Shown here piece by piece: positions 14,806 through 54,388 of a DNA stretch of 64,000 nt; within the stretch, counting starts at the first letter, position 1; each line of letters opens with the position of its first letter. The position numbers were made by a program, and so were the translations under genes. Location: sequence record NC_061446.1; one strand, 5' to 3'. The notes beneath the pieces were generated by a model. The model had not been told where the DNA came from. It saw only the letters and a list, made by a program, of their open reading frames with translations, and made no database searches.

Positions 14806-14850
14806 CTGGTCAAAATAGCCGTTCTTTTCAGTACCAGTTTATGTTATACT
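14798..14850 (+). promoter_or_regulatory. Phage promoter copy 3
   Basis: GCAAATAACTGGTCAAAA - 29 bp - (TGt)TATACT. Confidence 0.8.
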
Positions 14851-28060: not shown

Positions 28061-28116
28061 GTTTATGAGCGCTATCGCTCGTTTTTCTCATATAAGAAGA
28101 CAGAGGAAATAAGACA

Positions 28117-40492: not shown

Positions 40493-40544
40493 AGAAGCGT
40501 AGCGAATGCTGCGCTTTTTAACTTATGTCTGAGGAGACAATCAA

Positions 40545-41861: not shown

Positions 41862-42006
41862 CAATCCAGAGTTTGGCTCGCCCGTCCAGAAATGCTCAAT
41901 TCCCCAAGTGAGGTGTCTCGCGCAGAGGCATGACGGTGCGGGTCCTTTTTGAAGCGTACCGATCAAGTGTGTTTCACAAAGAACCCAAAACAAACAGGAG
42001 GCTGTT

Positions 42007-42405
42007 ATGAAATTTTTAGAAACGCGTAAAGAGACTCAGGTCGTTCTTATGGCAGGTGCTCTGGCTGGTGTGATTGAGGCGTTCGGTCGTGATGACGAAG
42101 ACGAAGGTAAGAAGTTGATTGTAACGGCTCTGCATCAGGTAGGTCTGACATTCGACGAGTTTCGTAAAATGATGACCGAAGTCTCACCTGAGGTAGAAGC
42201 GGAGATCAACGCTGTGACCGACGCTGTTATTGATTCGGACATTGACTTTGATGACCCTCAGCCTGTATGTTGCTCTGAATGCGATTCGCCAGTAGGCGAT
42301 TGTGACTGTGAGCAGGAAGACGAAGACCTCGACACAATGGAAGAACGTCCAGGCAATCGCAATGAAGACGGGCAGACTGACGAAAATGGCTGGAGCAAAG
42401 AATGA
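42007..42405 (+). CDS. Acidic hypothetical protein with CxxC..CxC motif (132 aa)
   Basis: AGGAGG RBS; CCSECDSPVGDCDC. Confidence 0.8.
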   Translation: MKFLETRKETQVVLMAGALAGVIEAFGRDDEDEGKKLIVTALHQVGLTFDEFRKMMTEVSPEVEAEINAVTDAVIDSDIDFDDPQPVCCSECDSPVGDCDCEQEDEDLDTMEERPGNRNEDGQTDENGWSKE

Positions 42406-42614
42406 GCCGACGCCCAACGCAAGATGAAGTAGACGGCCAGATAGCTGCCTCAGAAGAACAACGCTATAGCGAGCGTGAGGCACAATACGCTGATTGGTCA
42501 GATGACGATTTGCGTAATGCACTGCTGGAGAACGGTCTAGTCTTTGATGACGATGACTTAGACGACTACAGCCGACAAGACTGTCTCAGACTGCTTCTGG
42601 GCAGTGGCTACTAA
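42402..42614 (+). CDS. Small acidic protein with HEH-like module (70 aa)
   Basis: ATGA overlap; WSDDDLRNALLENGL...YSRQDCLRLLL. Confidence 0.7.
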   Translation: MSRRPTQDEVDGQIAASEEQRYSEREAQYADWSDDDLRNALLENGLVFDDDDLDDYSRQDCLRLLLGSGY

Positions 42615-42667
42615 GCATAAAACTGGACAAAATGACGGTTGTGTCGAAACAGCGTCCGTGATAGAAT
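42615..42667 (+). promoter_or_regulatory. Phage promoter copy 9
   Basis: GCATAAAACTGGACAAAA - 29 bp - (TGa)TAGAAT; TTGTGT at the -35 position. Confidence 0.8.
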
Positions 42668-42671
42668 ATAG

Positions 42672-42784
42672 ATGTAGGGCGCATATCGTGAGGAGTGCGC
42701 TCTATATGCGAATGACGCGATTCGCAGTACGAGAGAAGTTTTTGACCGTGTGTTTTCGTTTTTCCCGGACACACGGTCCTTTTT
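42672..42784 (+). ncRNA. Candidate ~113-nt three-hairpin small RNA
   Basis: Own promoter; stems 42672-84/42695-707, 42707-13/42720-26 and 42744-53/42769-78 followed by a U-run; next gene has its own promoter. Confidence 0.55.
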
Positions 42785-42861
42785 CAAGTGCCTTCGAAGT
42801 TTGAGGGTGCTTGCGAAAGGGTTCTATACTCTTTGAACACTGCCAGCTATCTGGGAAGTAT

Positions 42862-42915
42862 GCAGAAAACTGGACAAAATCGTGGTTGTTATCTGACGGC
42901 CACCTGAGCTATACT
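42862..42915 (+). promoter_or_regulatory. Phage promoter copy 10
   Basis: GCAGAAAACTGGACAAAA - 30 bp - TATACT. Confidence 0.75.
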
Positions 42916-42974
42916 ATATGCAGACGCATTGAGCGTCGCAAACAACATATCACTTATACTGAGGAGTATTAAAC

Positions 42975-44618
<1,644 letters not shown>

Positions 44619-44706
44619 GTTCGACCTGTAATACAAAACACTGATGGTAGATGCGGTTCAGACAGAGCCGCATCTCTGACAACTAAGCTGATTGAGGAAT
44701 CACACT

Positions 44707-45966
44707 ATGTCAAACGCAAACAAAATCCTGTTAAACGCTCGTGTTCGTCGTCTGGACGGTACTGTAACTTTCATCAACAAAGTAAACGCGAACGGTTATA
44801 GCACCGACGCGAAGGGACCTCAGATCCCGGTCAAGCGTCTTGTAGTCGCAGGCAAAACTCTGAAAGAGATTGAGTCGCCGTTCTCGAAAGAGGAGCACGT
44901 AATCGTGCAGGGCGTATCAGTCAAACTGAACAAGCGCCAGCAGCGTGAACTTGCTGATGGCTCGCTCGATGTTAAGTCTCTGAACCCTGACTTCGGTAAG
45001 CTGGTCTTCATCGACCCCGAAACAGGCAAAGCGACGGACGGTAAAGCCGTGAAGTCGAAAGCGAAAGATAAAGACGGTGTGAAAGCGGGTGTGAAAGCTA
45101 CTCGCCAGCGCAACAAAGATATGCGCACTAAGAAAGAACGTAAGGCAGAAGTCGCTGCGTCGAATGACGAGCTGGACATGTTGCCGTCTGATAAGATTGA
45201 TCGTAAAGCAGAGCTGGCCGGTATCATCGACGCGACTGTGGCTGATGCGACAACTAAAGAACGTCGCAAGCTGTTGTCCGAAGCATTCGATATGGACTGG
45301 AAAGATGTGAAGAAGCATGGCGGTAAAGGCGTCATCAAACATCTGGGTCGCAAAGCCGCGCAGTCTGCTGTGAATAAACTGAGCGCGTGCGTAACGCAGG
45401 ATGCTTTCATTAAGCAGATGCCTGTTGCGTTGAAGCGCCTGATTCAGGACGGTACGTTGACGCTTAACAAAGCGCAGATTGAGCGCGTACTAAGTGCGCT
45501 TGACCTTGACGTGAAGTTCTACAACATTGCTATGCAAACATTGCTGGGCAATCTCAAGCTGACTCTCGATCAGTCTGCTGCCGCTCCGAAAGCTGATAAG
45601 AAAGTGAAGAAGGCGAAGAAAGCAAAAGCTACTTACGCCTCGGAGAAAGAGCAAAAGCGCCGTGTTAAGAAAATGAAACACTCGCTGATCGCCCCGCCGA
45701 AGAAAATGCTGAAAGAAGCGAAGGCGCATATGAAAGCTGCCAAAGCGGCTATCGCACAAAAGCTGGGTATCTCTTCAAAAGAAGTTCAGCGGGGCCTGCT
45801 GGTGTATCGCGCAAACGGCGATGAACTGATGTTTGTTGCCTGTGATATGACAGGCCCTGTGTTCATCGGTAACGATGGTGAAGTGGTGGTGATTGCCTAC
45901 GCAAACGTAGAGACCGCCTTCGACTTCACTCTGAGCAAAACTTCTGAACTGGACGCCACTGTATGA
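44707..45966 (+). CDS. Lys/Ala-rich basic protein (419 aa)
   Basis: GAGGA RBS before ATG 44707; C-terminal domain similar to the repeats in the upstream gene. Confidence 0.85.
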   Translation: MSNANKILLNARVRRLDGTVTFINKVNANGYSTDAKGPQIPVKRLVVAGKTLKEIESPFSKEEHVIVQGVSVKLNKRQQRELADGSLDVKSLNPDFGKLVFIDPETGKATDGKAVKSKAKDKDGVKAGVKATRQRNKDMRTKKERKAEVAASNDELDMLPSDKIDRKAELAGIIDATVADATTKERRKLLSEAFDMDWKDVKKHGGKGVIKHLGRKAAQSAVNKLSACVTQDAFIKQMPVALKRLIQDGTLTLNKAQIERVLSALDLDVKFYNIAMQTLLGNLKLTLDQSAAAPKADKKVKKAKKAKATYASEKEQKRRVKKMKHSLIAPPKKMLKEAKAHMKAAKAAIAQKLGISSKEVQRGLLVYRANGDELMFVACDMTGPVFIGNDGEVVVIAYANVETAFDFTLSKTSELDATV

Positions 45967-53836: not shown

Positions 53837-54388
53837 ATGTCTAAGAAAATCATCAGCGGCCTGAACAAAGAAATCAAAGCCCTGGACAAATCTGAAAAAG
53901 CCCTGGTTAAAACTGCTGCCGGTCTGAACAAAGAAGCCGAAGCGATTGCTGCACGTCGCGAAGGCCTGGCTGCTCAGGTTGAAGCGCTGGCGAGCGGTGG
54001 TGAAGCTGCTCCGGCTAAAGCAAAAGGCAAAGCGGCTAAAGCTGAGAAAGCTGCTAAGCCTGCTAAAGCAGAAAAAGCTGGTAAGAAAGCAAAAGCTGAA
54101 AAGCCGGCCAAAGCTGAAAAAGCTGGCAAGAAAGCTAAAGCAGAAAAACCTGCTAAAGCTGAGAAAGCCGCAAAAGCTGAAAAGCCTGCTAAAGCAGACA
54201 AAAAAGCAAAAGCTGAAAAGCCGGCGAAAGCTGACAAGAAAGCTAAAGCTGAAAAAGCTGCTAAGCCTGCCAAAGCTGAAAAAGCTGGCAAAAAAGTAAA
54301 AGCTGAAAAGCCGGCCAAAGCTGATAAAAAAGCTAAAGGCGCGAAAGCGAAGAAGCAGGAAGAAGACTTCGACTTCGAAATGGAATAA
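53837..54388 (+). CDS. Histone H1-like / AlgP-like Lys-Ala-Pro repeat protein (183 aa)
   Basis: AAGGA RBS; about 10 (P)AKA(E/D)K repeats; acidic tail QEEDFDFEME. Confidence 0.85.
   Translation: MSKKIISGLNKEIKALDKSEKALVKTAAGLNKEAEAIAARREGLAAQVEALASGGEAAPAKAKGKAAKAEKAAKPAKAEKAGKKAKAEKPAKAEKAGKKAKAEKPAKAEKAAKAEKPAKADKKAKAEKPAKADKKAKAEKAAKPAKAEKAGKKVKAEKPAKADKKAKGAKAKKQEEDFDFEME

Follow-up and report, generated by a model that had tools for sequence, protein, structure and literature searches.

A promoter, hairpins and a U-run without a gene in the Erwinia jumbo phage pEa_SNUABM_30: probably the orphaned 5' part of a conserved mRNA leader

What does a phage promoter serve when it is followed by three hairpins and a run of uridines, and by no gene? 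The unit at issue lies at 42672-42784 of the stretch of DNA analysed here (64 kb in all, and referred to as the window) and was initially annotated as a self-contained small RNA gene. The window comprises the final 64 kb of the record of the Erwinia jumbo phage pEa_SNUABM_30 (MZ443778.1, Alexandravirus, 259,771 bp), to which the 700 bases around the unit are 100% identical. The hairpins occupy a 360-bp gap without an annotated gene (42615-42974), and the genes nearby are all on the + strand. Taken in order, the features of the locus are as follows.

42402-42614, + strand: upstream gene, 70 aa, pEaSNUABM30_00310 (from the annotation and the list of open reading frames)
42620-42667, + strand: promoter copy 9, predicted sigma-70-type and early
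42672-42707, + strand: hairpin P1 (stem 1)
42708-42725, + strand: hairpin P2 (stem 2)
42744-42784, + strand: hairpin P3 (stem 3) with its U-run, a module resembling an intrinsic terminator
42779-42819, + strand: P4, a long hairpin
42816-42834, + strand: P5, a short hairpin (from the fold and a covariance model)
42835-42862, + strand: spacer between P5 and promoter copy 10, with a deletion scar
42870-42915, + strand: predicted promoter copy 10, the seventh copy, serving the next gene (motif at 42870-42880, -35 TTGTTA, -10 TATACT)
42975-44618, + strand: downstream gene, 547 aa, acidic, PHROG 33433, with no function assigned (from the annotation)

To judge by this order, the 70-aa gene would be the last of its operon, and its transcripts must cross promoter copy 9 and meet P3, while any read-through from copy 9 would reach the 547-aa gene. 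The products of 42975-44618 and of 44692-45966 (PHROGs 33433 and 32501) are large, early proteins without an assigned function, and they carry long acidic or Lys-rich low-complexity stretches.

A promoter does precede the unit, as had been proposed, with its elements at 42620-42667 and as one of a repeated family. Copy 9 combines the upstream motif CTGGACAAAAT (42623-42633), a -35-like TTGTGT (42639-42644), a spacer of 17 nt and a TG-extended -10 element, TAGAAT (42662-42667), and the same promoter is found in the same place in all of the relatives that we read. Six matches to the pattern of its family (motif, fixed spacing, TGnTAnAnT) are present in the window, all of them on the + strand, where shuffled sequences lead one to expect no occurrence at all. 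The family motif can be written as (GCAAATAA)CTGGWCAAAAT, with the TG-extended -10 element about 35 nt downstream, and it is found on the + strand at 14806, 28015, 31438, 40448, 42623, 42870 and 55321. Downstream of each copy in the window come a short 5' hairpin, a ribosome-binding site and a gene, except that copy 9 has no gene. The family's 5' hairpins at about 40497-40519 and about 28067-28086 also have a U-run and resemble promoter-proximal terminators. The next gene has a promoter of its own, again as proposed, in copy 10, whose transcript would carry its 5' hairpin at 42923-42937.

The three consecutive stems of the initial annotation are likewise all there, the third of them with its U-tail. 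P1 pairs 13 bp around a 10-nt loop, AUCGUGAGGA (42685-42694), and folds at -19.0 kcal/mol (z = -5.0); its loop motif, CGUGAGG, is retained on three different stems, in SNUABM_30, SNUABM_13 and SNUABM_5, and AD1-type leaders carry another 5' hairpin in place of a P1 with this conserved loop. P2, with 6-7 bp, is present but weak (-6.3 kcal/mol, z = -2.0) and has no counterpart in most relatives: it is not clearly beyond chance, 10 of 200 shuffles folding equally well, and it is exclusive to SNUABM_30 and phB78, where it sits in an insertion relative to all other leaders. The P3 hairpin proper (42744-42778) has 10 bp, or 12 with weak pairs, and a 15-nt loop whose 3' half is the conserved UUUUCCCGG; it folds at -16.6 kcal/mol (z = -4.4), and its stem is followed by a C and then by U5 at 42780-42784. 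The full 115-nt stretch folds at -46.5 kcal/mol (z = -4.7).

The 3' end that had been placed at 42784 does not stand, however, as the conserved structured RNA continues through P4 and P5 to 42834. P4 folds at -20.3 kcal/mol (z = -4.9), and at its base the U-run that follows P3 serves as the 5' strand, paired with an A-run downstream. P5 has a loop that is altered in SNUABM_30 and phB78. Searched with a covariance model of P3-P5, the window gives its best match at 42739-42842, with 98.6 bits, and its next best with 17.6 bits. A dispersed repeat was considered and rejected, the pattern search and the covariance model each giving one copy in 64 kb. An exact-pattern scan of IMG/VR finds the arrangement once per related genome, plus in a few unrelated contigs.

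Could the unit instead encode a small protein? A 32-codon open reading frame runs from 42706 to 42804, its ATG is preceded at 10 nt by the Shine-Dalgarno-like GAGGAG of the P1 loop, which could be taken for a ribosome-binding site, and the frame is intact in phB78. Yet both the start codon and the Shine-Dalgarno-like sequence lie inside the 13-bp P1 hairpin; AD1-type leaders run into a stop directly after the U-run or have no ATG-initiated frame; the frame of SNUABM_5 is a different one, and that of SNUABM_1 stops after 19 codons. Among 11 relatives, neither strand has an open reading frame whose frame, start or length is kept. Since the frames vary in all three respects and several are cut short, the 32-codon frame is not a gene, and a protein product here is barely credible. 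That the unit makes only RNA, as first claimed, thus agrees with the comparison.

What this RNA belongs to becomes apparent from the relatives. A similarity search gave 57 related phage records, and we read the corresponding regions of phB78, AD1, Alexandra, pEa_SNUABM_1, 2, 3, 5, 13, 17, 22, 28, 32, 33, 34 and 35 and of one metagenomic relative. In all of these except phB78, the RNA runs past the U-run, through P4 and P5, into a further hairpin, P6, a pseudoknot in which the P6 loop pairs with bases just 5' of the Shine-Dalgarno sequence, the Shine-Dalgarno sequence itself and a gene. The unit in the window is the homologue of the 5' part of this structured leader, which is about 200 nt long. 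The gene behind it encodes 190-273 aa with a strongly conserved core, and by tblastn this core gene is present in 51 phage records that fall into five groups (Alexandravirus, Yoloswagvirus, Rivsvirus, Salmondvirus and a Yersinia phage). In every relative with the core gene that was fetched, the homologous unit leads into the ribosome-binding site and that gene; by group, a promoter-P3-P4-P5 leader with its gene is found in Alexandraviruses other than pEa_SNUABM_30, in Rivsvirus, in Yoloswagvirus and in the SNUABM_13 group. It is here that the idea of a self-contained small RNA gene fails, the homologous unit being the front of an mRNA leader in 51 records.

Searches of Pfam, PHROGs, NCBIfam and PDB sequences returned nothing that bears on the function of the core gene, and the proteins encoded next to it are without a family assignment as well. 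The C-terminus of its homologue in pEa_SNUABM_13 gives a weak, sub-threshold Pfam match to the Ish1 (HeH/SAP-like) motif, and so does the 70-aa protein encoded upstream of copy 9 in the window. Leaders with P6 and the pseudoknot can be seen at L004:2400-2474 (AD1), L029:820-895 (JA13) and L030:805-880 (JA29). The Salmondvirus phages keep only the P6 and pseudoknot part of the leader, and in them the helix that the P6 loop forms with the bases before the Shine-Dalgarno sequence carries a compensatory change. P6 and the pseudoknot are likely to be a translational operator of a widely conserved early gene, one that is absent from the window. In Yoloswag, a 65-aa coding sequence (gp311, L028:738-935) is annotated over the leader RNA, running across the third terminator module, P5 and P6 and into the start of the core gene; gp311 is probably not a gene.

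Covariation in relatives had been suggested as a check on the unit, and once run it speaks clearly, with helices P3-P6 covarying strongly. In an alignment of 17 leaders, scored for a structure that comprises P3, P4, P5, P6 and the pseudoknot, standard pairs fill 98.5% of cells, and compensatory changes occur in 12 pairs. Shifted controls reach at most 57.5% paired cells and at most 5 compensatory pairs, and column shuffles never attain the observed values. RNAalifold recovers P3-P6 independently from the same 17-leader alignment. Compensatory changes affect 5 of the 9 pairs of P3 and 3 of the 10 pairs of P4, in which 97% of cells are paired. The leader structure is genuine and selected, and stem 3 of the initial annotation is one of its helices. 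Searching Rfam with the window region and with the loci of four relatives gave no relevant match at E <= 10; on this evidence the leaders would make up an undescribed, strongly covarying RNA family of Erwinia, Dickeya and Yersinia jumbo phages.

The same helices admit a quite different drawing, in which P3, P4 and P5 together with an outer helix, P0, form a cloverleaf-like four-way junction, as a tRNA-like element or a degenerate tRNA gene would. Both ARAGORN and GenBank call a 95-nt tRNA-Glu on the corresponding stretch of pEa_SNUABM_13, with P5 as the T arm of the ARAGORN call, and P0 can be drawn in the window as well, where one of its pairs has a compensatory change. Against this, ARAGORN calls no gene in the window, nor in 6 of 7 loci; the hairpin that would hold the anticodon has a loop that varies between 3, 4 and 7 nt; and SNUABM_34, a phage that has the gene, shows something else in place of the supposed T loop. 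The closing helix P0 was itself rejected as weakly supported: no more than 80% of its cells are paired, and the better-supported P6 competes with it. A tRNA or its remnant is therefore a very improbable reading of the locus. The annotated tRNA-Glu(ttc) of pEa_SNUABM_13, which lies on P3-P5 (95 nt, L005:1474-1568, corresponding to MZ475891.1 241695-241789), is probably false.

If the unit is the front of a leader, where is the rest? By tblastn, the core gene is found neither in pEa_SNUABM_30 nor in phB78, and the window holds no paralogue of it. Homology to the relatives breaks off immediately past P5 and is taken up again where the cassette-closing hairpin ends, before copy 10, so that the right part of the spacer at 42835-42862 matches the end of that hairpin in the relatives. 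A single deletion, shared by the Korean and the Chinese isolate, thus took the gene and the 3' portion of its leader. The missing length comes to 0.8-1.45 kb and varies with the phage used for comparison. P6, the pseudoknot, the ribosome-binding site and the gene went with it, the promoter and P1-P5 remained, and relative to AD1 the deletion also took two further small genes. The apparent self-containedness of the unit is thus owed to the loss, in this phage, of what had followed it.

The remaining question for the 5' part is what P3 and its U-run would do. With its U5, P3 folds at -17.4 kcal/mol, compared with about -12 to -19 kcal/mol for the ordinary terminators of the window, and to this extent the proposal that stem 3 and its U-tail end the unit is borne out. 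The P3 loop has 15 nt, unusual for an intrinsic terminator, as against 4-6 nt in the window's canonical terminators and the 3-8 nt that count as short for this phage, and a simple terminator scan does not list it; the U-run, moreover, can also be read as a strand of P4. P3 is the first terminator-like site after the gene that ends at 42614, the + strand from 41946 to 42780 having none. Elsewhere in the window, an Ala/Lys-rich repetitive coding stretch at about 53880-54320 (+) gives many spurious hairpin-plus-U-run matches on the opposite strand.

Similar modules recur in the relatives. The leader family has one to four copies of the terminator-like module per locus, and in Yoloswag the combination of a variable hairpin with a U-run/A-run hairpin occurs up to four times, one of the modules standing directly after a gene and before the promoter, which is to say in the position of an operon terminator. 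In the Yersinia phage, too, a gene is followed by such a module. The same design is seen after a gene on an apparently unrelated IMG/VR contig, 3300045789_000617 (L033:1565-1638), in the order G+C hairpin, CCTTTTTAAAG, small hairpin, CTTTAAAAAG. A module made of a terminator and a U/A helix may therefore be more widespread.

Given the energy of P3, its position after a gene and the presence of like modules after genes, we take P3 for an intrinsic terminator. An element of this kind, set between promoter and gene, would be an attenuator; the order promoter, terminator, gene is found in the relatives, and in the window the gene is gone. Inspection by eye showed no alternative pairing that would make an antiterminator, the sole alternative pairing seen being that of P0 versus P6, and attenuation would therefore need a factor or be merely partial. 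The literature yielded no transcript data for these phages.

The unit has the leader's homology and its covarying helices, it has no coding potential, and it ends at a deletion. We consider it probable, if well short of certain, that what remains here is the 5' portion of a conserved, structured mRNA leader, orphaned by the loss of its gene and furnished with a terminator of the attenuator type. In the relatives, a host-type early promoter would make an RNA that passes through P1, P3 with its U-run, P4 and P5 and then P6 and the pseudoknot before it enters an early gene, and P3 would be the promoter-proximal attenuator of that core gene. In pEa_SNUABM_30, copy 9 would still fire early, and most transcripts would end at the U-run after P3 (42780-42786), giving an RNA of about 110 nt, while the remaining ones would fold P4 and P5 and enter the next transcription unit. 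P3 would also end the upstream operon, and the short RNA of pEa_SNUABM_30 would be a by-product without a purpose of its own. Where transcription starts, how efficiently it terminates and that a discrete RNA results are points that we infer from the sequence. The first reading, then, is kept in so far as the unit is non-coding, structured and probably transcribed, and given up in so far as it was held to be self-contained.

Two further findings count against the orphaned-leader interpretation. The SNUABM_13 group and Yoloswag keep a promoter, a P3-like hairpin and a U-run without an open reading frame at the same position, and the P3 loop motif is more conserved than termination would require. 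Both hint that the short RNA has a function of its own. The gene-less units concerned, second units of their genomes, are those at L005:2455-2632 and L007:2463-2633 (SNUABM_13 group) and at L028:1960-2160 (Yoloswag); they sit directly upstream of the promoter of the 547-aa gene's homologue, as the orphan unit does in the window.

It is accordingly possible, but on balance doubtful, that the unit is a genuine trans-acting small RNA, in which the terminated P1-P3 with its U-tail acts alone, pairing with host or phage RNA or binding a protein through the P3 loop UUUUCCCGG or the P1 loop CGUGAGGA. A function in trans, if real, would explain why the unit was retained after its gene was lost in cis. 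The promoter of its own and the hairpin with a U-tail that an independent small RNA gene should have are indeed present. All Alexandravirus leaders agree in the 3' half of the P3 loop, whose motif the gene-less unit of the SNUABM_13 group preserves almost intact and the Yersinia phage, in similar form, on another stem; three different stems carry the motif of the P1 loop; and gene-less units of promoter, hairpin and U-run occupy the same position in three lineages. On the other hand, the unit is physically the leader of a gene in 51 records, the full leaders of SNUABM_13 and SNUABM_5 lack the P3 loop motif, and the P1 with its conserved loop is absent from AD1-type leaders. The pyrimidine-rich loop may be a seed, as had been proposed: UUUUCCCGG is conserved. 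Within the window, the only complement of the P3 loop is the loop's own DNA. A comparison of SNUABM_30 with phB78 is uninformative as a test of selection: the two differ at 1 position in the 113 nt of the unit and by about 2% in the flanking kilobase, which is equally similar, and the low divergence of the unit therefore says nothing about purifying selection.

Somewhat less probable than a purely trans-acting RNA, in our estimation, is a dual function across the Alexandravirus-like phages, with attenuation of the core gene in cis and an action in trans through UUUUCCCGG or the P1 loop. Were it true, pEa_SNUABM_30 and phB78 would be natural cases that keep the trans function only. The more specific suggestion of a sponge for CsrA/RsmA was rejected. 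There are only two GGA triplets in 42672-42784, of which only that of P1 is clearly in a loop, and GGA is not conserved, the P1 of AD1-type leaders being without it and many of these leaders having GGG instead in the P3 loop; nor did Rfam give a match.

One further reading starts from what lies downstream. Copy 9 might be an extra, attenuated upstream promoter for the 547-aa gene, its read-through adding to expression from copy 10 in a tandem arrangement with a regulated or partial terminator between the two. From P3 to copy 10 is only about 90 nt, with no further terminator between them, and the same layout is found upstream of the homologous gene's promoter in the SNUABM_13 group and in Yoloswag. 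The AD1-type Alexandraviruses, however, express the homologue from copy 10 alone, with a plain hairpin before it, and the phage offers no evidence of an antitermination factor or site. We regard a tandem promoter as improbable, and return to the orphaned leader as the preferred account.

That account carries a caution and a prospect. A neat unit of promoter, hairpins and terminator can be the relic of a deletion, and only comparison with relatives reveals it as such. If the promoter-proximal terminator is regulated, it would add an antitermination or attenuation step to the early programme of these phages, which are in use as fire-blight biocontrol agents; and in pEa_SNUABM_30 and phB78 the short leader RNA should be observable without its gene.

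Several known systems bear comparison with this locus, to differing degrees. With tRNA it shares the four-helix layout and, in one relative, a T arm that ARAGORN accepts; unlike those of a tRNA, its arms vary and are too large, SNUABM_34 does without the loop, and the element goes unrecognised here and in most relatives. With the CsrB/RsmZ sponges it has in common one GGA in a hairpin loop (P1), whereas those RNAs present many GGA loops, and here there are two GGA, unconserved, in a sequence that the Rfam models do not match. Terminated riboswitch and leader transcripts that double as small RNAs, and small RNAs derived from 5' UTRs, are closer, for here, too, an RNA made by premature termination could act elsewhere; unlike them, the present unit has no aptamer of a known class (no Rfam match) and no target site in the window. 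In the operators of autoregulated leaders, a pseudoknot forms by the Shine-Dalgarno sequence, much as the P6 loop of the relatives pairs just 5' of theirs, although the pseudoknot part is missing from the window. The final parallel is with the late promoter of phage lambda, where a promoter-proximal terminator in the leader gives the short '6S' transcript. In contrast to lambda 6S, the dependent gene is gone from the present phage, and there are further covarying hairpins and, in the relatives, a pseudoknot at the ribosome-binding site. Like lambda 6S, it sets a predicted intrinsic terminator within about 100-200 nt of a presumably constitutive promoter, an arrangement in which the short RNA would be the default product and genes beyond it would need read-through.
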